64,000 bases of DNA from Oopsacas minuta (GCA_024704765.1 JAKMXF010000044.1:310001-374000); one strand, 5' to 3'. Shown: positions 8,385 through 58,704, counted from the stretch's first letter. A program made the numbers and translations. The notes: generated from the sequence alone by a model not told the origin.

Positions 8385-8780
8385 CTGCTTTCGAGAAATC
8401 TTTTGTGGAGGGATTCAGCAGCCAAATGGGCCGAATCATGAGAACACATTTGTACATAACATTCTCCTGTAGGCTGTCCTTTCTGGTTATAAACAAAGTG
8501 TATTCCACGAGGCAGTATATCATCTGCGAGTCTATTGAAAAAGTCTAAGATATCATCCACTGTTGCTGAATAAGGAAGACCCCGGAGACGAACACAATCA
8601 TCTTGATTACAATATTCATCGCGAGGAGAACTTCTACAAAAAGCTTCTTCTCTTTCATAAAAGTTAATATTACATCTATTAGGAGAAAAACCAAGAATGT
8701 TAGAAAAAGATGAGGATAAGTCCTGTCGACAAGCTATTTGTAGTAATTCACCAATGTTTGACCGAAAGACTTCGATGTAC
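8385..8780 (-). CDS. ESRP: Single internal exon encoding the end of quasi-RRM2 plus quasi-RRM3 of an ESRP/Fusilli (hnRNP F/H-superfamily) protein; rest of gene not found
   Basis: Open 132-codon exon bounded by TAG|G and AG|GT. It reads (R)YIEVFRS..DCVRLRGLPYSATVDDILDFF..GIHFVYNQKGQPTGECYVQM..HKRFLESR, matching recalled ESRP RRM3 ([40 protein letters not shown]). Confidence 0.75.
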
Positions 8781-14860: not shown

Positions 14861-15636
14861 CTAATCTTGACTTTGAAAGTAATGAGGCAATGAAGACAAA
14901 TTAGAAGTAGGAAATGAAGGGGACAATGTCTGAAAATGCGGCAGAGGAGGCATAGTTTGAGCCATCAGAAGAGAAAGTGTCTTTGATTAATCCGCTGCTG
15001 TATGTTGCAAAATCTGGATCACTCGATCGAATTTACTCTCAAGTCGATCTAGCTTAGAATCGATGTTAGTCAAAATCTCCAATTTCTTATCTTCTTTCTC
15101 TAAAATTGCACGTTTGGTCGATTCCAATTCGTAATTTTCCAAACGATGGCGTTTTCTTGGGGCTTGTTGGAAAAACTTTATTTCTTCAATATCTTGAGAA
15201 CAGCTGCGCTCACCAGCATCCTTTCAGTTTCATCATTGGAACATTGGAAATCAAGAGAGAGATCGATACCCAATTCAATGCCTTCAAAAGCTTCCTTCCC
15301 TTGATGCTACTGATTTTAGCTTCCCTTTCATTTAAATCATCATCTGCAGGACCTCATCCAGTTTTTCTTGCTGATGCTAACTTATCTGCAATACAAGGCT
15401 TATGTTTTGTTAGTATATTATACCATTTTTTCATGATATCATCTCTTGTTCTTACATTCCCACGTACTTCAGACAGTCTCCCTGAAATTTCTCCTCAGAT
15501 TTTGTTCTTATCATCGAAAGTCAGAGTTGATAGAGCGCCGAACAATTTCGATTTTTGACCATGAATGAGATCCGAGTGACATTATCTCCTCCTGAGTAAA
15601 ATTCTTTGAACGAGTCTTCGATTTTTCAGTGGTCAT
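14861..15636 (-). pseudogene. Harbinger accessory Myb/SANT-like DNA-binding protein, disrupted
   Basis: MTTEKSKTRSKNFTQEEIMSL..RTRDDIMKKWYNI..ARKTG*GP, the Myb/SANT-like trihelix pattern typical of Harbinger ORF2, followed by a C-terminal coiled coil. Confidence 0.82.
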
Positions 15637-16214
15637 AATGCGAGCGATTGTTAAGATATTATCATAATTAATTAATATTGTATTATTATTTATAACTAAA
15701 GATGATAATATACGGAAATGGATAAAATTACGTAGATTGCGTATATTTTGCAGGATGTCACTCAAATGACATTGACTTTATTTACCTTAGTTTAAATACA
15801 ACACCATTTTGTTTCAAAGTATATGAGATATAATTACAGAAATACTTTTATTGATGTCATAATACAATTCAGAGTGACATCAAGAAATAGTATCTAAATA
15901 TAGTTGGGTATGTAGTTCGACTTGTTCTATACTGCGGTTATTACAACTTGTAGATATGATAGTCAAACATATTGTCTTAAGCGATTTACAATCTTTGTAA
16001 ATAAATGCCTATTTATTATAATTTCATAGAAAAGTAGAATAAATTTTAAGTTAAGTGTACTCTTTACCCCACTAAATATAATTCTTAGAATTATTCTAAG
16101 AATCTCACTTAAAGTTAAGCAAAATTCTAAGATTTTGACTTAAGAATTTTAGTTAATAAGGCCCCTGATAACAATCTACTATTCTTTGACATGTTCTGAA
16201 TAACAAGAAATTAA

Positions 16215-16258
16215 ATGTATCCGTGACCTACGTAATATTAAGTAGGTCACGATGTATC
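16215..16258. mobile_element. Probable P-element-type excision footprint: 15+15-bp TIR stubs between 7-bp direct repeats
   Basis: ATGTATC | CGTGACCTACGTAAT ATTAAGTAGGTCACG | ATGTATC; the two 15-mers match as an inverted pair at 14/15 positions. Confidence 0.65.
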
Positions 16259-17212
16259 GTAAAATTTCTAAGGAAGCGTTCATTGATTTAAATATATATT
16301 GCGGAGATCAACTGTCCTATGATCCGACCCGGCCGACCAGTCAATCTCAATAACAATTAAACAATACTTAACCTTACTAAATTTAGATTGAAACTAACAC
16401 TATGTCAACCCCAATCTCGACAACTTTGGTGAATAAAAGAGGGAGATGTCGGGCAATAATCGAACAATTTGCTACTATGTATCTCAAACTGTTAGCTATT
16501 TTAACTTGCCGATCGAACGGTTGGTCAAAATCTCGAGCGATACGGCCAATATCTGACCGGTTCTATCTCTGATATGTTGAGAATAGCGGAATACAGTGTG
16601 AGCAAAATATAAAGCATAGCACTGGACGAACCTATAAGATCCGGATACTTCCTCAAGCGAGGAACGATTTTTGAGATCAGTTCAAAATGTTGAAAACATT
16701 TTGTGGTAAATGTATACATAATAGAGTTGACTTTAGCTGTATTTCCACGTCAAACACGTATGAATCCTGAAATTGTGGATTGGAACACTTTAGAACTGCC
16801 ATAGAGATAGTATTATTTCTGAGTTCCGGGCATATCCTAAGATCAGAACATCCTCAGCTCCGAGCGACACTGCTCAGATCTCAGAGCTTCGACTGTATTG
16901 ATAATCCGAATAGCAGATAGAAATCGCAAAATAAACTTCAGAAATTGGAATAGTAACTCTAGATCAGTTGATGATTTATGTTCCGTTTCAAATATTTACT
17001 TCTCCTCAAATGGCATTGCAGTAAAATTATTAAATAAGCAACTACGTATTTGTAACCCCAAGATGTTAAGATAAAGGAATTTATTAATATAATTAACATT
17101 TATGAAAAAACAAGTATGACATAATAGCACTATTTAATGTGCAAAAATAGGATGTGAATCTTGAAGCAATGTTGACGGGGTGATGAATTGTGAATACAGT
17201 TTAAGAGTTTAG

Positions 17213-18208
17213 TTAAGTAGAAGGTTTTGGAGGAATAGAAGCTAAGTCTACATTACCCCCACACACTACAACACATACATTCTGTACACCTATACTTGAA
17301 GACAGATGTTTTAACTTGAATGAAGCAGCAAATGCAGCAGCAGCAGAAGGCTCTACTATAATTTTAAGTCTCTCCCAACTAAGATACATAGCAGAGATTA
17401 TCTCTTCTTCAGTTACAGGTATAACGTCTGTCAGATGTTCCTGGAGAACAGGCCAAGTTAAGGAGCCAATCGGAGCAGTTAATCCATCGGCTATCGTCTT
17501 AGGTCGACTCTCCATAGGAATCCTCTTTTTTGCTAAAAACGAGCGATATTTATCACCGACATTTTCAGGCTCAGCTGCATATATTTTAACACTGGGCTTT
17601 ATGCTCTTGACAGCAATACAGATACCAGATATTAATCCCCCACCAGAAACAGCTACTACAATTGCATCTACATTTGGAACTTGTTCTAGTATCTCAAGAC
17701 CTACAGTTCCCTGTCCTGCCATTACATATGGATTATCATACGGATGGATCATTACAGCATTTTCGCCTTGTTCCTTCTTCACTTCTTCTATCTTACTCAT
17801 TATTTCAGGCATCAAAGTACCACATCCATATACACTACCTCCAAAATCCTTAACGGAATTTATTTTAACAGCTGGTGAGTAACTAGGCATTACGATGTGT
17901 GCTTTCAAACCTTTTAACTGAGCAGTCTTAGCCACTGCTTGTGCATGATTTCCACTGCTAAAGGCTACAAGAATGGGCGGTGTGTCCCTATTCAAACAAA
18001 CATTAGTAACAGCGTTCATACAACCTCGAAACTTAAATGAACCAGTCCTTTGAAAGTTCTCGCATTTGAAGTAAAAGTTAAATCCGTGCATTTCATCAAG
18101 AGATGTTGACGTCATTATTGGAGTTCTATAAATGAACGGTTTGATTGTCTCTGCAGCTTTTCGTATGTCATCAACAGTTGGAGGCACGTCATCAAGGGGG
18201 TTAGCCAT
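17213..18208 (-). CDS. SRR: Serine racemase-like PLP enzyme (fold type II), paralogue 1, intronless, 331 aa
   Basis: KCENFQRTGSFKFRG (PLP lysine), FSSGNHA (Ser at the racemase re-face position), GQGTVGLEI, VSGGGLISG, AAEP, TIADG, EPSAA and CGGNVD. Confidence 0.88.
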   Translation of the reverse strand: MANPLDDVPPTVDDIRKAAETIKPFIYRTPIMTSTSLDEMHGFNFYFKCENFQRTGSFKFRGCMNAVTNVCLNRDTPPILVAFSSGNHAQAVAKTAQLKGLKAHIVMPSYSPAVKINSVKDFGGSVYGCGTLMPEIMSKIEEVKKEQGENAVMIHPYDNPYVMAGQGTVGLEILEQVPNVDAIVVAVSGGGLISGICIAVKSIKPSVKIYAAEPENVGDKYRSFLAKKRIPMESRPKTIADGLTAPIGSLTWPVLQEHLTDVIPVTEEEIISAMYLSWERLKIIVEPSAAAAFAASFKLKHLSSSIGVQNVCVVVCGGNVDLASIPPKPST

Positions 18209-18885
18209 GTGAGCTAATAGCTAATTTATCAAAATAATCTATATTCGAATTAATGAGGATTGCAACAAGGTAACACACAAGGTGCAACTTTGTTGGAGGA
18301 AAAGAGAACAAGTAGGCACATGCAACAAGTTTGCCTTCAAAATCCGAATAACTAATTTGCATGAATATTGTTGCGTGGATATTCAACATACAGGATGTAA
18401 GTTTGTTACATCCTGTGGTGGGCTTATGGTGTGCTATAGTCTACTGCTGCTAAGCAGATTGAAACAATATCCATTAATTAATTAAACACAATTGACTCTC
18501 ATTAATATGAAACCTTTATCACAAAACTTAGATAAGACTTTTCATTCCCACCAATGCCTTCCAATGAAAATCAGGATAAATACAAATTCCAGATAAAGAC
18601 TATCACTTGGTCTCATATTAACGAGAGTCCATTAAATACTTTTATATACTGCTGAGGAGCCTGTAAGGTGGATTATGTAACGTAAGGTAGTATACTTGTA
18701 AGATTACAGATTAAAGTGATAAAATATATGATAAGATCGAGTATAATCCTGTTAAATTACGAATCAACAATATATTACTTACTTGAATCAGTTAGTTGTA
18801 GACTATAGAGCATGGGTTAACATAAGTTTCCTTCAGAAGTATGTATCATATAATATTTTTAATTACATAATAATTACTGTATTTG

Positions 18886-20431
18886 CTAAGTTGCAACTTC
18901 CTGTTGGTCAGGCAATCCTGAGTGTAGAATAGAGCTCAATTGCCCTGACATCTTAACAAGTTCTGGATCTAGTGTTTTAAGACTGACACTAGTAATCAGA
19001 GACTCGAATTTAGTAATAAAGTATAGAGCAGATTTGGAATCTGCATTCTTTATAAGAAATATAGAGTAGTTAAGTAGAAGAGATATGTCGTCCGGCATAA
19101 GAGTTAAAGAATGTTCAAATGCCTGTTTAGCTTGACTTTGTTCATTTAGATGAGTTAGAGCTATTCCTAACAAAAGGTAAGATGCTCCTAGACGTGGATT
19201 GGTGCCAATAGCCGCGCGTAAGAAATGAACAGCTGATGCATATTGCCGTATTGTGAGATGTATCAAGCCTAAATTGTATGCTATGCGCCATTCAAAAGGA
19301 GCTAAGTACCAAGAGCGTTTGAGACAACTGACAGCTATGACGTATTTCTTCTTGTCAAAGAAACACATACCAATATTATTCCATAGCTGGGGGCTCTCTG
19401 GAGTGGACAGAGTAGCAACACGGTATTTGGAAATAGCTACATCATGATCCTAATAATAACAACAATATATTTAATTATCAATAGGCCATCTTTACTATGA
19501 AATATTAACTGTATTAGCATATTCACCTGATGTTTCTGCATAACGCTACCTACAGCAAGGATAGCCTTGTGCTCAGTTGGAGAATAAGCGAGCGAGTTGC
19601 CTAGATACTCAAATGCCTCTTGATGCTTATTGTTTCTAAGATATAACAATCCTAATGTAGTCATTAGCTCAGTATCTTCTGCAGAGATAGCTAGAGCTTC
19701 TTTATACACAGCAATAGCTTGTTCGATATTTCCCTCCTCAAGATGTACTCTACCAAGTTGCATGTAGGAGCTGTGTTGCTGTCCAATCTCTATAGCCTTC
19801 TTGAGATGATTCTTTGCAGCAGAACTGTCTCCAAGACGAGCATAGCATATTCCTTGATTATGCAATATCTCCCAATCCTTATTCTCAGGATTTCTGTTTT
19901 GTATAAGTTCTAATGCACTTGAATACACCTGAAGAACGAGTATACAGTAGTTTGTTGCTATTATACAAGCGTGTAAAATTACAATGTTGTATCTCAAATT
20001 AGTACTTCGGTATAATACTATGAACCTACCTCAATAGCTGTTTTATGTTTGCCCATTAGAAATAAAGATCTTGCAATCTGTTTCAAGTTTTCTGGATTTT
20101 GTGGATTTAGTCTTGAAGCTACTTGAAGAGAATCCAAGCTCTCCTGAATCCTTCCTTCCTGTCTGAGTACCATTCCTTGTACATACTGTGCATACTCACA
20201 CATACCTTGAGTCTCTGCTAACTGCTGAACTATCAGAGAACGACAGGTGTCAAAATCTTTTGACATGTAATGAGAATGAATCAACCAGTTACGAGATTCG
20301 AACGGTGGAATTTCAGGTGCCTTACTTGTTCGAATCATTCTCCGCTCCACCTGACGAACTGGGATATCAGTATCATTTGAATTCACAACCTTATCATCAT
20401 TAGATCCTGCACCAGTACCACCATCTGACAT
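18886..20431 (-). CDS. BBS4: Bardet-Biedl syndrome 4 protein (TPR, BBSome subunit), 3 exons: 20431-20030, 19928-19527, 19449-18886 (455 aa)
   Basis: KAPEIP..NWLIHSHY, QGMCEYAQYVQ, LKQIARSLFLMGKHKTAIEVY, PESPQLWNNIGMCFFDKKKY and YLAPFEWRIAYNLGL match recalled human BBS4. Both introns are GT-AG, phase 0 (101 and 77 bp). Confidence 0.96.
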
Positions 20432-47463: not shown

Positions 47464-48384
47464 TTAGTGTAGATCAATCATAAAATCCCTCTTTGTGTAG
47501 AGAAGATAGTACATCTGAGATTGATGAGGAGTCATCAGTTCACAGAATATATCTCCCATATTTCTCACCTTCTCTAAATCATCTTTAAGATAATAGCTTA
47601 ACATTTCTTGCATGTGGTAGAACAGATAATCATCTACCATTGCAATATTCTTAGTATGGACATCATGTGGATTATAGTCTTTAACCAACTCTTCTAGTTC
47701 ATTGTCACACTTAATATTCTTTTCATGTCGAAACATAACTAGTAACATGTAAGTAAGCTCATTCTGACGAACCAACACAGTATGTACACCTGGAAACTTC
47801 TTAGCAATTTCTCTTATCTCTTTAGAATATACCATTGCTTGTTTATACTCTTTGATAACTATACTAATAGTTATTATTTCCTCACGAAATGGAAGTAACT
47901 CTGGCGATTCAGGTGGAAGTAGGGTGAGTGCATATTTTAACGAATAAATAGCTTCGTGGTATTGACTGAGGTCTCTGAGTAGCTTAGCTAAACGTTTACA
48001 TATGTATATACAAGTGGGGAATTTCTTTTCACGAACTTCAATCTGTATAGCCTTGTTGAAACAATGGATACCAGAATGTAAATGATATTGAATGGAAAGA
48101 CAACGGAGATCAGCTGTATCCTTCTCTGTTGCAAAAAACAGCTCACCAGCTTCTAATAAAACCTCAACTTGTAGACCTGTGTCTCCTAACTCAGCATCAC
48201 ACTTCGCCTTAGACTCTAACACCATTGCAGCATAAGGTTTACAATCCTGCAACCTTAGAACCCTAGCTAACCTCTCCAGATCCTCAGAGGCACCTGCATA
48301 ATCTGGCTTTTTGAAACCAAACTTCTTTTTTGTTTTAGCTAGAATAGCTTCATATTCTTTGAGGACGTCATGATTGGGATCCAT
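47464..48384 (-). CDS. F8A1: 40-kDa huntingtin-associated protein (HAP40/F8A), intronless, ~306 aa
   Basis: DVLKEYEAILAKTKKKFGFKKPDYAGASEDL..LRLQDCKPYAA..AKC matches recalled HAP40 ([41 protein letters not shown]..ARC). The likely ATG is at 48384. Confidence 0.85.
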   Translation of the reverse strand: MDPNHDVLKEYEAILAKTKKKFGFKKPDYAGASEDLERLARVLRLQDCKPYAAMVLESKAKCDAELGDTGLQVEVLLEAGELFFATEKDTADLRCLSIQYHLHSGIHCFNKAIQIEVREKKFPTCIYICKRLAKLLRDLSQYHEAIYSLKYALTLLPPESPELLPFREEIITISIVIKEYKQAMVYSKEIREIAKKFPGVHTVLVRQNELTYMLLVMFRHEKNIKCDNELEELVKDYNPHDVHTKNIAMVDDYLFYHMQEMLSYYLKDDLEKVRNMGDIFCELMTPHQSQMYYLLYTKRDFMIDLH

Positions 48385-49277
48385 GCTAAGTTGTTTGATA
48401 GCAAACTTTGAATCATTGGACACTCAAATACATAGCAACAGTTGTCTAGGATTCGGAATTCCCAAGACTTGTGTAATTATAAATAAACAAAATCATCCTA
48501 GTTATGTATTTGATAATTTGCAAATGGCAAAGTTTTACTTTGTACAAAACTAGCAATTTTGGTGTAAAGTGAAATTGTGAATTTAGTAATAAGTTCCATT
48601 CTCAGTAATACAACAGTCCATATATGGTTCTTGGTTTGCACCCGAGGTAGTCTAACAGGTGCATCACGAAGGGTGCTTCGGTTGTAAGCGTAAGTTTACT
48701 GACTCACTAAAATCAGACATTTAGCTTCCTATATATTCTTTGCAAGTTCAATTCACTTTAAATTCTCCCCTTAAGAAGTCACTTAAATTTTGAATTTTTC
48801 ATTATCAGTAACTTGTATTAGTAAATTCACCCACCCATTAAATGTCATAATGGTAATACAGAGCCTAGAGGGTGTATTTATGATTTGATTCAGTTTCATG
48901 ATTTATTAAAAAATGTCCAGCCGACAAACTGGTAGTGCAGCTAAGGGTTATGTATTTTTGTTCTTTTCGGGGGGCATGCCCCCCCCGATCCCCGTGTAAA
49001 TGCCGCAATGCACCGACCCGGCTGATTTTTGGCTCCTGGATCTGATAAATATTTCAGGTTATTCAATATTATCCGTCCCCTAATGTACTTCATGTTCTAT
49101 CCTCAAATCCAATGAAAAAATTCCGAAAAAATAACTCAAATAAAAAGATTTAATATGGGAATCATTAATCGAGGGTTTATTTGTAATATATTACATTGTG
49201 ATATATAATAATACATTTAAGTAATTAATAATAAGTAATGTAATGTAGAATAATAAGTGATGATTCGGTGGCAATTT

Positions 49278-49808
49278 TCAGAAATTTAAAAAATCATAAA
49301 TTCTTTTCAGTTTGAACGTAAGGATCAAAGTGTCTGTGTCGATATCCCATTGAGCACGAGTCATCTTATCATCTACTGGGTCAGGAAGGTTCAATGATAG
49401 ATAATATTTAGGAGTAGTCAGCAAGAGTAGAGTTTCTTTTATGTTTAATTGTATGTCACTACTCTTCGCATTAGGAAGTTTGACTCGTAAAATCATGGAT
49501 TCACATGACGCAGTGCCAGGGTTCTTTTTCCCCATGCCTAGAAACACGTCTTCTGTATTTACAGCTTGTAGGAACTTCATATCATACTCGGGGGAGGGTC
49601 TAGGGTCAGTATATGGCACTATGTTATCAACCTCTGATTTATTCCAGATATCCTTGGAGGGTTCTGAAATAGGATCACATTCCTGGATCTGTTTAACCGC
49701 AGGAGCCCCGATGCTAGCCGGAGTGAAAGGGGAAGTTTTTGTTTCACAAGATTCATCTTCTGGTGGATTGAGAAGTGCAGACAGTTTCAAAAGACAATCT
49801 GTTTCCAT
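49278..49808 (-). CDS. DNAAF6: Dynein axonemal assembly factor 6 (PIH1D3/Twister), 176 aa
   Basis: LSALLNP, DIWNKSEV, DPRPSPEYDMKFLQAVNTEDVFLGM, VKLPN..SDIQLNIKE and terminal DFLNF. Confidence 0.93.
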   Translation of the reverse strand: METDCLLKLSALLNPPEDESCETKTSPFTPASIGAPAVKQIQECDPISEPSKDIWNKSEVDNIVPYTDPRPSPEYDMKFLQAVNTEDVFLGMGKKNPGTASCESMILRVKLPNAKSSDIQLNIKETLLLLTTPKYYLSLNLPDPVDDKMTRAQWDIDTDTLILTFKLKRIYDFLNF

Positions 49809-49989
49809 TATTACCAGCTACAGTAGAACTCTGTTAGTATGTACTCGGAATAAGAAATACTTATACTTTAAAAACTGATTAACCAAAATTCATCAAAGTT
49901 ATACATTTCTATGTAAACTATTCCGGAGAGTAAATTAATATCTGTCTCTTATGACCACTATCTCCGACAAAAATAGTTTGATATACATA

Positions 49990-50074
49990 CTATTAAACCT
50001 GCAATGAACGAACATCTGCTTCTTATGACCGCTGAATTCGGAAAGCGGTCGGTCGTAAATGACAGGCTTTACTG
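49990..50074. mobile_element. Short pogo-type MITE
   Basis: AAACCTGCAATGAACGA left arm and GGTCGTAAATGACAGGCTTTACTG-TA right arm. Confidence 0.5.
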
Positions 50075-50151
50075 TACATCTACGTACTTCAGTTTTTAGT
50101 AACAGTACCTATTAACCACATTCTACTGCATATGTAAGACTTATTCAATCC

Positions 50152-50475
50152 TAGAGATGCTGTGGTTCAGTCCGTCTTGCAAAACTAGTTATTGGACCAG
50201 ACCGATGCTCTGGACTCTAGTCTCTGGACCTATAGTTCCTGTTTGATTTCCTAGCTACTAATTTCAAATATATATACCCTTTGTTCACTACCAAATAGTC
50301 ACTATTGCGCCTTAAAGGGTTGATCGAATCCATTTAATTACAGCTCGTATCTTATATAATGGCGACGTGGACGAAGACATAAGGCTAGATCAATTCTAAT
50401 TTCTAGATACACACCAACGGTATGGACAGGTCCTATCCGGTCCGGTCCTAGGTTCACTGTGTCACCGCATCTATA
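50152..50475. mobile_element. hAT-like non-autonomous element
   Basis: Termini TAGAGATGCTGTG / CACCGCATCTATA and subterminal GGACC/GGTCCG repeats; the 8-bp TSD is not conserved. Confidence 0.45.
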
Positions 50476-51011
50476 TTACTATTATTGACATTCTGCGGAT
50501 GATTATGAGTTTTTAATTGAGTTCATATTATGTCTATCTCCAATTCTATACTATTAAATACAAAATCTTTTGATTTCTAATTTCTAATTCCTTGTCAAAT
50601 GATATTACAAATACATACTGTCTTTCCCTGAAAAAGCGTCGGGGGTTTGTCTGCACGCGCTTATGAGCTTTCTCAGGGAAATATGGTAACTGAAATTCTG
50701 GTTATGTCCTTCACTGTTTACAATCACAGAAATGAATCTCACAGTTGAGTAACCCATGTATTCTCTCAAATGAGTGATAATCGTTCTCATAACAAGCAGA
50801 ATATATACGGATACAAAAGATATAATAAAATTATAAACGATACAGATATAAGTTAAGATCTATAAAGTATACAAATCCATTTATAGAGTTCTTTATTACA
50901 TAACATACTGAACTAAGTTAGAATGAATAGATTAAAATTGCTACAATATTTTATGCTATATCTGCGAAATGTTAATGGTTTTGCCGATCGCAATGCCCCA
51001 TCTTCGCGTAG

Positions 51012-54000
51012 TCAGAGCCGACAATTGTGTATTCTTATCATTCCATCTGACCAAACGCTTAAAATATTAATATTAAACACTTGACTCTCTTGCCTTGGGG
51101 CACATTTAGAGTAGATTCCTTGGCATTTGGCAATTGACTCAGATATAGCAGGGATCGTCATTTTAACATTGAATGTGTAGCAATCTATAATCAAAATCTC
51201 TCCAAGTGTGCTTGATACTGCAAGGAATATACCATTTTGTGTGTTGCAGACTGCACTACTGGTAAATTCATTTTCTAAATACTTGTTCAATAACGATTTA
51301 TTTTCAACAGATGAAAGATCCCAAAGCTCTACACTACTCCTACTGACTGTATTTAGAGTCAGTTTATCTAGATTTACACTCATTACTTCTTCATGAATTA
51401 CAGAAGTGTGTATATGTGTAGGTTGCATGTGAGATATCGGCCAATTAGGCTCTCCTTCCGTTTCGGGGGTAGTAGAGGTGTGTGGTAGACTCAGAGTTAA
51501 AAGGTAATTGTGAATTAAGTGTGAGTGGAAGATGACGTCATGTGATGCTAGCTTGAATAGAAAGGTTGTTTGTGTTGCATCTAGTTTCCAGACAAATATA
51601 TTTCCTGAAATATCAACAGTCACTGATTGCCCCTCGTGACACTACAAATACATAAATGAGGTATTGAGAATATGAACAAAGAAGGAGAGGTTCTACAAAA
51701 TATTTCGAGTAATCGCTCTCAGAAGTACGACAAGTGTATATAGATTAGTGCACAAAGCTAGTGTGACTTTGTGCAAACAATACGACGTTTATGTACAAAT
51801 ACCAATGGCAGTAATTTCCGCCATGGAACTCGAATAGCGCGGTAAAATACGCTCAAACAACATTCAAGGCACAAATGTCTCTGTATAATTCTCACTGCGG
51901 TATAATTATATAGAACTTACATGAATATCATTGATACAAGTGGGATGAGAAGAATTTGCAAATACTAACTCAATGCTGTGTTGCTGATCGGTGAGAGAGA
52001 AGTGATACATGACTAGTCTCCCGTCAGTGGTACCAGCTAGTAAAGAGTTCCCTGAGATTACAGATAGAGCAGATATTGACGTAGTCTACAAGATAAATAT
52101 AGTATGTAATATAGAAATCACTAAATTATATTCTGACAAGGAAAACTGATCCCGCAATCAGATCTATAACAAGGATACAATTATTATACAGATTATTAAT
52201 AGATATTATAATTAGGGAAATATACAAGATTGTAGATATTAGGACGAGAATCAAATTTCTAATTTAGGTGTTCCTCAATTAGCGGAAATATGTAATTTTC
52301 GATAAATTTAACAGAATGTAGTGACTAAATATTGATGAAATACCTCACTTAAAAAATAAATTCCTAACTAATTACTTCCAACCTATTCCATCCCTCAAGT
52401 AATACTATAGCTACTTGTTGGAATTCTATAAAGAGAGACACGCCCTATCCCATAAACACAAAATACCTTAACAGGATCTCCTAGCAAGTACTGCTTCGTG
52501 ATCCAATTCCAAGCAATAACACTTCCATCCTCACAGCCCAATATTATAATACCAAAGTGTTTGATGGAGCCCTGGATACAGGATATGTTAGCAGTAGCAA
52601 ATGTCTCCTCTCCTTGATAGGATAGAGTTATACGATTTGTGTTCTGTAGATAGCAAAAATCGTAAATCAATACTGTGTTATGGTATAGAATGAAAATCTG
52701 ATTGAAACATCCAATGAATCCGTTTATAGGAAATTGTCTAAGTTTCTCTTCGTGGATAGTTTTAAAGTAAGGAAATACAGTTCTCTGTTTAAAATGCCTG
52801 TGGTATCGGTTATAGGAACTGATCATAGGGTGGTGCATCGGTTGAGAGAATTGTCCGGGATAGAAATAGGGGAGGGGAGGTATCAATTGGGGGTAGTTAG
52901 ATACGTTCTGTGTAGGAAGGTAAATACGTCCTCTGGTGTACTGCTGAGGTAGAATAGGTATTCTGGAGTCTCTGTCATAGTAGTGAGTGAATGTAGGCTG
53001 TGAGGGATGATAGTACCAACAATTATCTCCGTAATTACAGTGTCCTGCTAGGAAGTACTGACAGGGCATGTTCTTCCTCTCATCAGTGGAGGATCCGCTC
53101 TCTAGCGAATCAGCTGTTGAGGGACGTTCAGTAGGGAAGGGAGGCTCGGAGATGAAACTCTTAGGAGAGTCAGTACATCTATCATGAGGCTTGTATTGAG
53201 GAGTAGATATACTGAAGCATATGCTACTCCCTGAGGAGATGGAGTTACTGGGGCTTGTGGGGGCGTAATCTCCTGGAGATGTGGGAGCAGAGGGACTAGG
53301 ATTTGGAACGGTTGGACTGTGAGCAGGTGATGCTGTATTAAAGAGTAACTGCTGAGGGGACATTGATCCTGATCCCCCTGTCCCCCTCATGAATTGAGGC
53401 ATCTGTACAGGAATAGGATATAAAGGTTGTGATTGTATATCAGCTGGTATAGATTGTAGATGTGAAAAAGCTTCAGGGAAGTTGTGTGAGAGAGCTGGCC
53501 TATCCATAGCAGTGATGGAGGGTACGTAATGACTGACAGGAAGACTTGAATGTCTCCGCCTGAACCGTTGAGGTCTGGGTTCTGGTAGCGTAGTGGTTAT
53601 GTTGAGGTGAGTGAAGGTCTGTTTAGCATACATCTGTACCCAGTTAATAAGGCCACGGTGCAAGTCAGGGCGAGAGAGAAGATTAGTGTCCTATTAAGCA
53701 ACACAAGAAATATGAATAAGTACACAGTAAAATTGGGTACACTGTGGTCACAGAGATTATTTATAGTAAACTCTCGTTATATCGAACACGGATACCTCGA
53801 TATATCCGCTTATATCGAAGCCCTAATTGAACAAATATGGCTCCAAATCGTTAACGTGACATAAATTACATCGGTTATATTAAAGTAGATATCGCAGTCC
53901 CATGATCTTCGATATAACGGGAGTTGATTGTATATCGATTTTTTGTAAAATTGATGATACTCCATGACCAATTTGACCCAAATTGACCAAACAAGTCAAC

Positions 54001-55118
54001 TTTGGATGTGGTCATAGTCCATGAGAGTTTGGGAAATCCTACAGTAGAGAATTATAGCAATATAGCGTAACGTACCAACTGGTAACATTCTCTCCCTAAA
54101 CACTCCAGATCAACCCAGCAATTACCAGCTCTACACTCAAACCTTGTTCTGTCTATCAACAGCTCCTGAGCTGAGGTGTCAACCTCGTGTACGAACTCAG
54201 GCAGGGGAGCAGGGTGCCAGTTCAACCACTTATTGTCAGCATCTGGGTCGATTGAGAATACGTGATAGAGAGTGTGGTTATTCTAATAGACAAATTATTA
54301 AATAAATAGGAATAACCGAAACTACATGAAAACTAAATTCCAAAGTAATTTAGACTGATAAGAAAGCCAGAAAATTCTTTTGAATTAACATGGATGGGTA
54401 TGCGAACAATGGAGGCCAGCTAATGCAATTCGTGTAAGTGCATTATCTATCCTTACAGCTTCTGATAGAGACCAAAGGAATGGTGCAATAAGATTACAAT
54501 CTCTGTAATTATGCGAAAATGGCTCGAATTAGGTTAGATTTTTATAAGAAAGAAAATATATTCGAATTTCCTGGTTCAATTACAAAAAGTGTTGTTAAAG
54601 GAAGATACGCAACGTACGTAGATGTAAAAATGTCTATAAAATAGATTTTCTATAAAAACTCACAAATTAACGAAAAAGAGTTTATGAAATTAGTTGTGTG
54701 TTTCGAAACTATGATTTCGATGTGTATATATAATAAACATGGAAATTTGATAACGTACTTTTCCTGATTGACTCCAAATAATATGGATGAGAGGAGGTAG
54801 ACCGTGAGGGGTACCTCCTCCACAAGTCTCCATTAATTTCCTTCTAGTTCCAGTAGACCCATGCTCATCCATATCATTGATTTGATCTAATCTACCGCCA
54901 GGAAATGACCATTTGAGGGATCCAAATGAATTCTGGCCTTTTCGTTGCAAAATACAAAGTACTTGTCCATCTGTACACCGACACACAACTGCGATCCCAA
55001 CATAAGGTCGTGAATAGTGTGCACCGAGTTCAGCATAGGGCTGAGCACGATCTGTGTCAGAGATTTGAGTATCAGAATTGTCAGGCTCTTGGTAAACGGG
55101 GTAATTCTGAGTGGCCAT
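51012..55118 (-). CDS. Five-exon gene: degenerate Nudix domain + Ser/Pro-rich linker + CCCH zinc finger + WD40-like propeller (~861 aa); exons 55118-54759, 54282-54076, 53690-52467, 52085-51921, 51641-51012
   Basis: All four junctions are GT-AG and phase 0, giving one open frame. Motifs: KWSFPGGRLD..TRRKLMETCG (Nudix box without catalytic Glu), CQYFLAGHCNYGDNCWYYH (C-x7-C-x5-C-x3-H), and ILGCEDGSVIAWNW, LLAGTTDGRLVMY, VDISGNIFVWKL, VWSDGMIRIH (WD40-like). Confidence 0.8.
53764..53930. mobile_element. TA-flanked pogo-type MITE inside intron 2 of the Nudix-CCCH-WD40 gene
   Basis: TIR TAGTAAACTCTCGTTATATCGAA / TTCGATATAACGGGAGTTGATTG-TA. Confidence 0.75.
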
Positions 55119-55996
55119 TGCTAGTTAGGGGGAAAGAAAATAATAACTGGCGCATATGAACATTTGAAAAGTGAAATATTTCAAACTTGGATAGTACATT
55201 ATATAGCATCACTTTAGTCTAATGAATAATAGGCACACAAAAATATAAATCTGAGAAAAAGGGAAAAATGAAACTTGGTAGATCTCTTGAATGAATGTAA
55301 CGGTACATTATCTTACCATGGTTATGCATATGCTGAAGAGTAAAAGAACTAATGTACTGCTTGTGATGTTAGATGTTGTACATTCTTTTCATACCATTGG
55401 TCTGGAAAACCTTGAACCCAGACAGACTTTAGACAGGCTAGTTGCTAAGATTAGGAAAAAAAACTATAAAAGAGAACGGGATACAGCAAATGTGGATTTG
55501 GTCTTAAAAGGCCTATCTTACACTATGGATGTGAATAATAAAAATATTTATTGTGAAACATATAAATTGTAGAATTTCAGTGAAAATATATGCCTCCGTA
55601 CAAATACTTCGTTTAGGTATTCGTATTAATTAAACTCTACAACTGGATATACAAATATAAGGTTGCACAATTAAGTATTTATGTGTTTGGGATTGGTTTA
55701 TTATCAGTGCAGTGTGCGGCTGTTTGCAGGTATTCAAGCGTTTTGGTGAGTTCTTGTGTTCATTGACACGCTCAGATCTACAAAAAACTGCATTTGATAG
55801 TATTAATTATCATCTAAATATTTCGTGCTTCTTGTATAATATGCAAATATGTAGAAACCCTGTTATATACTCACTTTACATGTGTTTTGTACAATAAAAT
55901 CTGTGAAATACTCAAAGGTAGATACGAGATATATATATATATATACGTATATGCAATTTTCGTACTTTATGTATCAATAATTGAGATTAAAACATA

Positions 55997-56036
55997 ATGG
56001 TTGTTTGTATGGTTGTTTGTATGATTGTTTGTATGA
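55997..56036. repeat. 12-bp tandem repeat (ATGGTTGTTTGT) x3.3, with an (AT)n tract nearby at ~55929-55946
   Basis: Direct inspection. Confidence 0.8.
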
Positions 56037-57135
56037 ATTACAGATGAACAGATATACGGCAAATGTCAGGAGAAAATATTGTATAGTATCCTGGATTCCT
56101 GGGCGTTGTCCGACACAGCCATAAAATACTATATTAAAATAAATGCTTTCTAATTATGTAATAACAATATATTATTATTATGAATGGTAGATTCTTCCCA
56201 TGTAATTCTATACATTCTATTTGTAGTGCAATTTTGTGTACAATTTTAGTGCGTTCTATAATCCTTTCTCAGTATGTATGACATATAGGATAGACAGTAT
56301 ATAGAGACATGACATAAATGCCAATTCGCATTACTTACTAGATTGGGTTGGTATTTCACAATTCTGGGTTATTATTCAATTTGCCCTAGAAGGCTATATT
56401 ATACGCAGGTATTTGATACCAAAATGTGTTTTCTAATCACTGTTTCAATAAAAAAAGGCTCTATAAACACAAATACGCAAGTAACCAACTAAAATTGTAC
56501 ACAAATATCTGTTTACTTACAGAAACAAATAAATTAACAAACTTGAAAACAGAAGGTAATTGAGATTTAACAATTTTGAATATTTCAAATGTCAAAAAAT
56601 GGTCTCCAGGGAATAAATATCGATCCGAAGTTTCACGAAGCCAAATTTCGACTGTCAAACTCTATATTGTGCAACCATATGTTCAATGATACCTGCACCT
56701 CGGGTTTATAATTACATCATTTCAAGGAATATGAGCTAGCAAGAATTCAGAAAAATAAAACTGTAATGATTTGTTCCCTCATGATGAAGGGATTTCTTCT
56801 CTCTAACTAATGGAAGTATTGTCAAGTATTGAGCAACTCACTACAAATAAACTTCCTTCAATTTTAATCTTAAATATCTGAAGATTCCAATACTGCGGTG
56901 ATGTAGGAGTAAATATTCTCAAATATTTCATTTACCTGACACGTATATTTCCCCTGCTACAGGTAACATAATAGATACAGATTCCTCCAGTACATAGATA
57001 CATTGTGTTCAAATATAATATAAATTCAAGAAAGACATGAAATACGATAAGTGCGTACGTTTATGAATCCTATAGACTTAGTAGTAACAGATCTATAGTT
57101 GAAATTAAGAGATAATTATTTGTATAATTAAAATC

Positions 57136-57621
57136 TCAATATTGCATCTGACTTAAAGCTTGTAGATATTGTATTCTGCTCTGAATAGCTTGTTTCACCC
57201 ATAAAAGCTCAAAACTTAATTGTCCACGTAGCTTCAATAACTCATCTCTATCACTTGGGTATTCTTGTAAGATAGTATGACTAGCATCCATGGTTGTTAT
57301 TGGGGAAGCTATTATAGATTCTTGTAAACTAACATCAGAGGTATCTTGAATCGGGCGAGTTGATATTATAATTTCATTGGGTTGTGTTAGATCTTCAACT
57401 TCTGCACTAATATTATTTATTTGATATTCTTGTGTCTGAGATACTGTAGGATAGCATAGAGATTTGCTGCTGGGCCAACTAACAGAGTTATTAGTTAATT
57501 CATTTTCAATCTCCATAAAGACATCATTATATTCTTTTCTTACATTTTGTATGATGTCTCTCCTTTTTAGATAGCCTCTAAGAACTGATTGTAACTCAAT
57601 TATGAATCCTTCCGTATCCAT
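57136..57621 (-). CDS. IQCC: IQ motif-containing protein C-like, 161 aa
   Basis: N-terminal IQ motif LQSVLRGYLKRR..EY..IE.EL and C-terminal LSFELLWVKQAIQSRIQYL (recalled human: LAMELLWLQQAINSRKEYL). Confidence 0.88.
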   Translation of the reverse strand: MDTEGFIIELQSVLRGYLKRRDIIQNVRKEYNDVFMEIENELTNNSVSWPSSKSLCYPTVSQTQEYQINNISAEVEDLTQPNEIIISTRPIQDTSDVSLQESIIASPITTMDASHTILQEYPSDRDELLKLRGQLSFELLWVKQAIQSRIQYLQALSQMQY

Positions 57622-58146
57622 GGTTGGTAACTATATATATATTTCCCACAATTCAATAGAGTAATATCAGCCTATTGAAGGAGAAATATTCAATCTTTTC
57701 TCTATAATCTATAAATTAATGCCTACTGTTGCGGAATATTTAACAACATCCACTGCTGCAAAATTTTATAACGGGCTGTGACAAAGTTCTCAAACTATAA
57801 ATTTCACAATCATGAGATTCGTAATATATCCCAATATCCAATCCTAATAAATAGGTATATGTTGCTATGAAAGACCAAGGTGTGTGTAGTCAGTATACTA
57901 TACGTTGAAATCGTGATAGAATTATTGCAATAGCCTTTGATAAACCTAATTCTTGAGTGAGAAGTTAAAGAACAAGATAATTTGAAGCCAATAATTATTA
58001 ATACATTCGGAATAATAATGTTAGTCATATACGTAGTTCACCTGTCAGTTTATAATAATTAAGTGCAAATTGGTTGATGTATCAATTGAAAGAACCAGTA
58101 AGCTCAAGTTTAAAATTGTAAAACTGTTCATCATTTTATGAGTGCA

Positions 58147-58704
58147 TTATTGGTTATGTTTTCCACAAACCCATTTAAACTTGAGTGAAATATTATCCGT
58201 AACTTTCAAAATATCTTGTACAGATATCCAGGTGCATTGACATGCATAAGCTCTGCTGCCTTTCAACAGTTTGGTTTCTGAAATTAACTTTAACTTATCA
58301 GGCATGTGATTCCTGAAAAATAGATAATCAGTTGATTGAGTCCATTTCCTGTTATCAATTGAGATAATACTAAAGTCACAAGATGTACAACGAATATTGT
58401 CACAGGCTTTGAGAATGAAATTTGAAGATTTACCCATAGTTCTTTTGGTACCAGCAAGATACAGCTGATCGCATTTATTAATAGGTTTATGTTGCGTTAT
58501 TTGATGCGATATTGATGTCAATTTTCTTGAAGGTGGAGAATTTTCAATTTGGTTAATATCTTCTAATAACATTTCTACTTCTATGTCTATCTCTTCCTGA
58601 CGAGGTTTTTCCGAATAAGGGACGGGGGATTTTGAAGGGGACAGTATATATCTAGATTCAACTTCATCCAGCAAATTGTCTAATTCCGCATCCACATGAT
58701 TCAT
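58147..58704 (-). CDS. CFAP418: Cilia- and flagella-associated protein 418 (C8orf37/BBS21), ~185 aa
   Basis: ELDNLLDEVES, ACDNIRCTSCDF, DYLFFRNHMPD, GSRAYACQCTW and KWVCGKH. The likely ATG is at 58704. Confidence 0.95.
   Translation of the reverse strand: MNHVDAELDNLLDEVESRYILSPSKSPVPYSEKPRQEEIDIEVEMLLEDINQIENSPPSRKLTSISHQITQHKPINKCDQLYLAGTKRTMGKSSNFILKACDNIRCTSCDFSIISIDNRKWTQSTDYLFFRNHMPDKLKLISETKLLKGSRAYACQCTWISVQDILKVTDNISLKFKWVCGKHNQ

Follow-up and report, generated by a model that had tools for sequence, protein, structure and literature searches.

A sponge gene family joining a Nudix-like domain, a CCCH zinc finger and a WD40-like propeller, with a degenerate Nudix box in glass sponges

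Introduction

The window analysed here, a stretch of 64,000 nucleotides (JAKMXF010000044.1:310001-374000 of assembly GCA_024704765.1), carries on its minus strand, between positions 55118 and 51012, a predicted gene in which a Nudix-like domain, a single CCCH zinc finger and a WD40-like propeller are joined in one reading frame. On the evidence of sequence comparison, this gene is the glass-sponge orthologue, most likely that of Oopsacas minuta, of an uncharacterised family present in glass sponges and demosponges, and we consider it very probable that both the gene model and the Nudix/CCCH/WD40-like architecture hold. As we read it, the gene is a case of enzyme-to-pseudo-enzyme drift built from known parts. 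The three domain types are well known and their combination was not found described: a full-text literature search for a protein combining Nudix, CCCH and WD40 returned nothing relevant, no member of the family is characterised, and its members in databases are solely 'hypothetical protein' entries. Sizeable conserved multi-domain genes of animals are thus still unannotated in early-branching lineages.

Gene structure in the window

The gene consists of five open exons, which on exon-by-exon translation add up to 861 codons, and its four introns all run from GT to AG and lie in phase 0, just as the initial annotation had proposed for a frame of about 861 amino acids. A TAA lies in frame nine nucleotides 5' of the ATG. 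The exons and the elements within them, all on the minus strand, are as follows.

55118-54759, minus strand: exon 1, 120 amino acids; variable acidic N-terminus and, from residue 36, the first Nudix-like half
54899-54816, minus strand: remnant of the Nudix box, G74-G101, placed column by column with hhalign
54282-54076, minus strand: exon 2, 69 amino acids; second Nudix-like half, CWVDLE motif and C-x4-C-x5-C-x4-C cluster
53690-52467, minus strand: exon 3, 408 amino acids; predicted helix LHRGLINWVQMY after the Nudix-like domain, basophilic site, Ser/Pro-rich linker and, in the rest of the exon, CCCH finger, Tyr/Pro/Gln-rich stretch and WD-like blades 1-2
53561-53538, minus strand: RRRHSSLP, exon 3 residues 44-51
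53063-53007, minus strand: single CCCH finger, C-x7-C-x5-C-x3-H
52085-51921, minus strand: exon 4, 55 amino acids; WD-like blade 3 (TTDGRLVMYHF), with a faint NBCH_WD40 match
51641-51015, minus strand, with stop TGA at 51014-51012: exon 5, 209 amino acids; final four WD-like blades, with an insertion

The window is AT-rich (GC content about 36%), and the published glass-sponge genome of Oopsacas minuta has 365 scaffolds, about 61 Mb and 36% GC (PMC10280926). When the assembly of 61,460,524 bases in 365 contigs was searched for exon copies, exons 1, 3 and 5, the ones tested, each proved to be single-copy. Searches with the window gene were made exon by exon, while full-length analyses used the continuous open reading frames (ORFs) of four relatives, here called P0234, P0266, P0302 and P0303.

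Conservation among glass sponges

A word search with exon 3 retrieved two orthologous ORFs (P0001 and P0002) at 73-76% identity. The contigs of these two ORFs (L004 and L005) and a third one (L019), all from other genomes, have the complete set of five exons in unchanged order and with their splice sites kept, and in contigs L017/L018 exons 1 to 3 are collinear, again with conserved splice sites. Taking all exons together, amino acid identity with these other genomes ranges from 60 to 94%; within the glass-sponge loci the identity is 87-94% for exon 2 and 61-75% for exon 4. The ratio of nonsynonymous to synonymous substitution rates (dN/dS), calculated for each exon in three lineages, lies between 0.02 and 0.16 with saturated dS, and the two Nudix exons change least, having the lowest dN.

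These values bear upon the possibility that the gene is decaying or non-functional and that the degeneracy of its Nudix box reflects such decay, a reading to which the box itself and the sub-threshold Pfam scores of the window sequence might lend themselves. The exons are all open, the gene is single-copy and in a syntenic setting, and the purifying selection seen here refutes the pseudogene reading, to which we give next to no credence.

The intron between exons 2 and 3 bears on another alternative, namely that two neighbouring genes, one for the Nudix domain (exons 1-2) and one for the CCCH finger and propeller (exons 3-5), have been joined by mistake. In the window, reading through the donor of exon 2 meets a stop after seven codons, the gap to exon 3 measures 385 nucleotides, and the genome is compact (PMC10280926), all of which would suit two separate genes. 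In three relatives, however, the same gap shrinks to 61 (L004), 55 (L017) and 54 (L019) nucleotides, starts with GT and ends with AG in every case, and is each time either frame-breaking or stop-bearing. At 54-61 nucleotides the gap is too short for an intergenic region. Moreover, exon 3 starts without a conserved start codon and encodes the helix that the whole family has after its Nudix domain, while P0234, P0266 and the Geodia barretti models, from an annotation aided by transcriptomes, carry the parts within one ORF. The two-gene reading was consequently rejected on the evidence of this intron, and we hold it to be very improbable. One five-exon gene, as initially annotated, is what the conserved splice sites, the unreadable short introns and the continuous ORFs of relatives all support.

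A family spanning two classes of sponges

How far does this gene extend beyond glass sponges? The HMMER search with the exon-3 profile, taken alone, had suggested that exon 3 is an orphan, a view overturned by a word search with the exon-1 profile. The latter retrieved about 70 ORF fragments of relatives at 45-90% identity, all ending at the SGK/GT donor (the slash marking the junction; also written KSGK/V), so that the donor of exon 1 is kept family-wide; on three of the contigs concerned, an ORF with a CCCH finger follows on the same strand. A look-up of sequence clusters then provided P0234, an ORF of 1143 amino acids found on contigs of 4.1-4.2 kb from two sequencing runs with an mRNA-like layout. 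Mapped onto two genomic loci (L020 and L021), P0234 falls into five collinear pieces, the break points of which coincide with the exon boundaries of the window; the four intron positions of the family are therefore kept in the window gene. P0266 joins the same parts in a single frame, and exons 1 and 2 and the start of exon 3 of the window tile both P0234 and P0266, with junctions that leave neither gap nor overlap.

The cluster of P0266 includes, besides isoforms, a named demosponge protein, CAI8055981.1 of Geodia barretti (UniRef100_A0AA35TYG8; P0303, 1139 amino acids), which is labelled 'hypothetical protein' GBAR_LOCUS30503 or 'C3H1-type domain-containing protein'. The Geodia barretti genome was annotated by MAKER with transcriptome evidence (PMC10542158). 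Exon 1 of the window is 57.6% identical to P0303, exon 2 is 41.8% identical to its residues 107-172 (E = 2e-16), and the finger region also matches (E = 1.4e-6); the helix at the N-terminus of exon 3 aligns to LQHGLVRWVQNYGEH of the relatives. The window gene has every feature of the family, and in unchanged order: Nudix domain, LQHGLxRWVQNY helix, RRxS site, CCCH finger and propeller ending in WSDG. P0303 shares this order, including the long linker before the finger, and related demosponge-type genomic loci share the five-piece structure. It differs from the window protein in being some 280 amino acids longer, mainly in the linker, in keeping a canonical RELEEE Nudix box, in having a basophilic site without the proline at +2, and in possessing a propeller too far diverged from that of the window for BLASTP.

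It follows that the combination is not special to one animal. The initial annotation knew of no animal protein with these three domains together, a statement that still stands for the characterised literature and fails for the databases, given the Geodia barretti entry. Conservation of the family across two classes, Hexactinellida and Demospongiae, and the strong purifying selection acting on it imply an important role in sponges.

The Nudix domain and its box

The Nudix box GX5EX7REUXEEXGU marks active hydrolases, not the fold. By homology the domain probably belongs to the Nudix superfamily: the profile of exon 1 aligns with that of 11 Nudix paralogues of O. minuta at a probability of 94.8% (hhalign, E = 5.4e-8), and three relatives exceed the Pfam NUDIX cut-off with 27.8 (P0303), 24.4 (P0237) and 23.8 (P0262) bits. 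NCBIfam gave faint MutT-like matches with no subfamily. The motifs KWSFPGG and GLPPLIHI are invariant throughout the relatives of exon 1, and in the window a loop insertion of three to four residues separates the GG from the box helix.

With regard to the box, the sequence R93-K94-L95-M96-E97-T98-C99-G100-G101 of the window occupies the position of REUxEExGU without fitting it: the glutamate of RE and the second one of EE are replaced by lysine and threonine, respectively, while E85 and E97 are retained. In E. coli MutT, E53 and E57 are the glutamates of most weight for MutT-type catalysis. The initial annotation had the box lacking the metal-binding glutamates, which is correct for the two replaced residues and not for the other two; the degeneracy as such (RK..ET as against RE..EE) is confirmed for the glass-sponge lineage, where RRKL[ML]ETCGGG is invariant in the sequences seen. 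Most of the other relatives read (K/R)RELxEECGGG instead, and they and the Geodia sequences keep the canonical RE..EE; on this comparison the degeneracy of the box is real but derived, having arisen in glass sponges and some other sub-lineages and not being ancestral. The alignment of exon-1 relatives contains at least three sub-groups of boxes: RELxEE, xELKKE and no box at all. It seems that the catalytic residues of the box disappeared on several separate occasions.

This raises the question of what the Nudix domain is retained for, once its box has degenerated. One possibility is that Nudix hydrolysis persists in the glass-sponge protein, acting on RNA 5' ends or a small nucleotide and relying on the remaining acidic residues (E85, E97 and D82/D84) together with an altered metal site; the finger and the propeller would then be targeting parts. 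Some Nudix enzymes tolerate non-canonical boxes, the canonical RELxEE is kept in Geodia and most other relatives, the domain is very strongly constrained, and E85 and E97 are kept. The two replaced glutamates, on the other hand, are lysine and threonine in every glass-sponge sequence seen, and different residues of the box have been lost in other sub-lineages, so that catalysis seems dispensable for what the whole family conserves; an active hydrolase in glass sponges is in our judgement improbable. Because the two key glutamates are Lys/Thr and yet the Nudix domain is the most constrained part of the protein, the glass-sponge domain is now probably a non-hydrolysing binding module.

Precedents for such a module are found in CFIm25/NUDT21, an RNA reader of UGUA, and NUDT16L1 (TIRR, Syndesmos), a protein and RNA binder, both of which are inactive Nudix folds. 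The likeness, which concerns how the proteins would work, is that of a Nudix fold kept under selection after losing box glutamates and presumably serving as a binder. Unlike the sponge protein, CFIm25 and NUDT16L1 are single-domain proteins, and no sequence relationship with them is detectable beyond the superfamily; the loss in glass sponges is also recent, since sister lineages keep RE..EE. Among Nudix proteins acting in an RNA context, Dcp2, RppH and T. brucei MERS1 were top Foldseek matches of a relative's model, itself of low confidence (mean predicted local distance difference test, pLDDT, of 54), and these matches are non-significant (E of 0.15-1). No Box A, Box B or other Dcp2 feature was seen, and the window box differs from those of RNA-directed Nudix hydrolases in lacking the two key glutamates.

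Exon 2 contains a further motif, C-x4-C-x5-C-x4-C (window 54085-54135, residues 50-66 of the exon), which is confined to glass sponges and invariant in three of their aligned sequences, while L017 and demosponge relatives are without one or more of its cysteines. As a conserved zinc site this cluster was rejected, some relatives being without two of the cysteines; it may have no role, or else be a zinc or disulfide site that the Nudix domain gained in this lineage.

Linker, basophilic site and CCCH finger

The segment RRRHSSLP, of which the initial annotation presented RRHSSLP as a basophilic kinase or 14-3-3-type site, has two parts of unequal distribution. Within three glass-sponge sequences R44-R46, H47, S48, S49 and P51 are all invariant, and in 12 relatives the RR pair followed by S is invariant as well (R210 and R211 of P0234). 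The basophilic RRxS is therefore family-wide, whereas the proline at +2, which produces the 14-3-3-like R-x-x-S-x-P of mode-1 form, occurs in glass sponges only. Use of the segment by a kinase or by 14-3-3 proteins is our inference from the motif. The Ser/Pro-rich linker and the Tyr/Pro/Gln-rich segment that had been noted on either side of the finger are both present; we take the former to be disordered, and its SP motifs are conserved among glass sponges. Since RRxS is invariant and SP motifs are conserved, phospho-regulation of the protein is suggested.

Within the same linker (window 53238-53279, residues 138-151 or thereabouts of exon 3) there are two tandem units resembling the heptads of the RNA polymerase II C-terminal domain (CTD), S-A-P-T-S-P-G followed by Y-A-P-T-S-P-S, which are nearly invariant in three glass-sponge sequences. 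They may be a chance product of Ser/Pro richness or a docking mimic for CTD kinases or phosphatases.

The finger is present as originally read, a single C210-x7-C218-x5-C224-x3-H228 with the spacing of CCCH fingers and Y/F/W residues inside, invariant in the orthologues, and it is a genuine CCCH finger. The relatives' finger scores 29.1 bits, above the Pfam cut-off of 20.5, and its best matches in PDB are the fingers of TTP, BRF2, MEX-5 and Roquin. A HMMER search of 1.84 billion proteins with the exon-3 profile found more than 150 CCCH proteins through the finger columns (E down to 1.9e-18); full-length matches were confined to the gene's own cluster, and outside it the finger alone was matched.

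TTP/TIS11 provides the best match of the family finger among solved structures (1m9o, E = 4.6e-5; also 1rgo), and its K-E-I-L-C lead-in and GEKCxFAH core are present in relatives too. However, the family has one finger and not a tandem pair, is without the NOT1-binding tail, and in the window has a more diverged finger (GDNCWYYH, x7 spacing). In overall arrangement, a single CCCH finger lying N-terminal to a WD40-type propeller is also the plan of ZFWD-type proteins of plants and protists. When protein-language-model features are compared, no named proteins lie closer to exon 3 than these (0.82-0.83, values below 0.9 being a lead only). Those proteins have neither the Nudix domain nor the long linker, and with respect to common descent, the exon-3 HMMER search gave no match reaching from the finger into the propeller save short stretches.

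The WD40-like propeller

Seven WD motifs of the strand-C type were counted by eye from exon 3 to exon 5: NTVLIYDF, DGSVIAWNW, DGRLVMYHF, SGNIFVWKL, SSVELWDL, LGEILIIDC and SDGMIRIHN. By this count the predicted propeller is seven-bladed and WD40-like. The blades recognised at the outset agree with the count and draw indirect support from relatives that match WD40 profiles: P0303 matches WD40_CDC20-Fz (E = 1.7e-10) and relatives match designed WD40 propellers in PDB (E = 8e-7). The weak Pfam matches of exons 4 and 5 are mostly to beta-propeller families in all three orthologues, and those protein-language-model neighbours of exon 5 (at 0.94-0.96) that bear a family are all beta-propellers. The exon-5 profile of the window and that of the demosponge type are collinear from end to end (hhalign, E = 3.5e-4, probability 37%), with SGxIxVW, GxxxIxN and WSDG in common and a C-terminal WSDGxIRI that is shared with relatives. 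The hhalign comparison of exon-5 profiles with one WDR5-like protein was uninformative.

Several results weigh against the architecture as described above, and most of them concern the window sequence itself. Exon 1 reaches 16.6 bits with Pfam NUDIX (PF00293), under the curated cut-off of 21.1; exon 2 alone has no significant match to the profile of the Nudix paralogues; and a whole-genome scan with the Nudix family profile did not pick up the window locus. The finger likewise stays below threshold (21.8 against 29 bits for zf_CCCH_4, 18.8 against 20.5 for zf-CCCH), as do the propeller exons, which match beta-propeller families with E of 3e-4 to 0.05 (VID27 at 20.5 against 22.1 bits; CDC20, EML and Prp19 with E of 1e-3 to 5e-2) and PF00400 not at all. 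Profile comparisons and the relatives are what the domain calls depend on. Structural models are equally weak: AlphaFold2 gave a poor pLDDT of 32 for exon 5 alone and, for the Nudix region of the relative mentioned above, less than 50 in the box; the Foldseek matches of that region, nearly all of the top 35 or so listed being Nudix proteins (Dcp2, NUDT6, MERS1, RppH, ADP-ribose pyrophosphatases and Syndesmos), include none that is significant (E of at least 0.15, template modelling scores of 0.2-0.3).

Possible function

The make-up of the protein, with a TTP-like finger, aromatic and proline-rich flanks of low complexity and a WD40 platform, suggests an RNA-associated scaffold. The role put forward in the initial annotation, an adaptor for RNA granules, decay or nucleotide sensing, is plausible. 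The finger would contact single-stranded RNA, the WD40 face would recruit partner proteins, and the Nudix fold would supply a binding pocket suited to a nucleotide or a cap-like RNA 5' end. Proteins with an intact box, as in Geodia and most relatives, could then deliver a working hydrolase of the decapping or deNADding type to RNA, whereas the glass-sponge domain would only bind. The RRxS site and the SP motifs of the linker might place the protein under the control of phosphorylation, perhaps involving 14-3-3 proteins in glass sponges. As a whole this mechanism is tentative, and we put it at somewhat below an even chance. Each of its components, from RNA and ligand binding to partners and phosphorylation, is deduced from domain types, and other considerations count the same way: E97 in the box and E85 remain, leaving room for weak or altered catalysis, and RNA binding by one CCCH finger in isolation is weak, while CCCH fingers can take other ligands.

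A scaffold for proteins or signalling unrelated to RNA offers an alternative, in which the WD40 domain would be a substrate receptor or a subunit of a complex, the Nudix domain would be a sensor of ADP-ribose or a different nucleotide, or else a protein binder in the manner of NUDT16L1/TIRR, and the finger would have a structural role or poly(ADP-ribose) as its ligand. Inactive Nudix folds can indeed bind proteins, mouse Syndesmos (4zg0) is one of the Foldseek matches that fall short of significance, WD40 domains are generic scaffolds, and there is just one finger. Yet the closest solved relatives of this finger are the RNA-binding ones of TTP, BRF2, MEX-5 and Roquin, its Tyr/Pro/Gln and Ser/Pro flanks of low complexity are typical of RNA-granule proteins, and nothing points specifically to ADP-ribose. 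We regard this alternative as rather unlikely, preferring the RNA-associated scaffold.

A bolder version of the RNA-associated scaffold, which we consider rather unlikely, would make the protein a sponge-specific RNA 5'-end factor, combining a Nudix domain of the decapping or deNADding type with the TTP-like finger and the WD40 domain, and turned into a cap or nucleotide reader in glass sponges. If this were true, the reader would cause RNAs to be protected, stored or routed instead of degraded, with the RRxS site as a phospho-switch and a conserved 3' untranslated region (UTR), and two sponge classes would display a natural transition from enzyme to reader. Independently of the ligand, the family offers a natural comparison between a canonical box, in Geodia and most relatives, and one with two glutamates replaced, in glass sponges, where the domain is even more constrained; a pair of orthologues thus opens to direct test what a Nudix fold does after hydrolysis stops. 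In practical terms the value is modest, consisting in a candidate post-transcriptional regulator for sponge biology and not in a new type of system.

The 3' flank and the neighbouring genes

Adjoining the stop codon, some 215 nucleotides of the 3' flank (50795-51011) are 80-85% identical between glass-sponge lineages for which synonymous sites are saturated, and are no less conserved than the coding exons. Counterparts lie at 8763 to about 8985 in L004, 8767 to about 8985 in L005 and 8456 to about 8680 in L019, and GATCGGCAAAACCATTAACATTTCGCA and TGTATACTTTATAGATCT are among the long blocks that do not vary. In this flank RNAalifold found no covariation and only a weak consensus structure, and Rfam has no match for it; on the locus as a whole, Rfam gave one insignificant SCARNA7 match, in intron 4. 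The conservation at the DNA level is likely to reflect a sequence-specific regulatory element of the 3'UTR. The gene belongs to a syntenic block (window 47467-58704) of genes that are all on the minus strand and follow the same order in L004, L005 and L019. The other features of the block are listed below.

58704-58150, minus strand: RMP-like gene
57621-57142, minus strand: uncharacterised ORF, between the RMP-like gene and the Nudix-CCCH-WD40 gene
51011-50795, minus strand: probable 3'UTR element, about 215 nucleotides adjoining the stop, conserved at the DNA level
49808-49281, minus strand: PIH1_CS gene, after the Nudix-CCCH-WD40 gene
48384-47467, minus strand: ORF of 307 amino acids, after the PIH1_CS gene

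For the orthologous gene on L021, the contig of a demosponge-type relative (ENA ERZ25069267), three tandem GH7 genes (Glyco_hydro_7, cellulase-type) lie directly downstream, at 15326-19908. The contig is animal-like, with MICAL and TRIM/filamin genes near; GH7 genes are unusual in animals.

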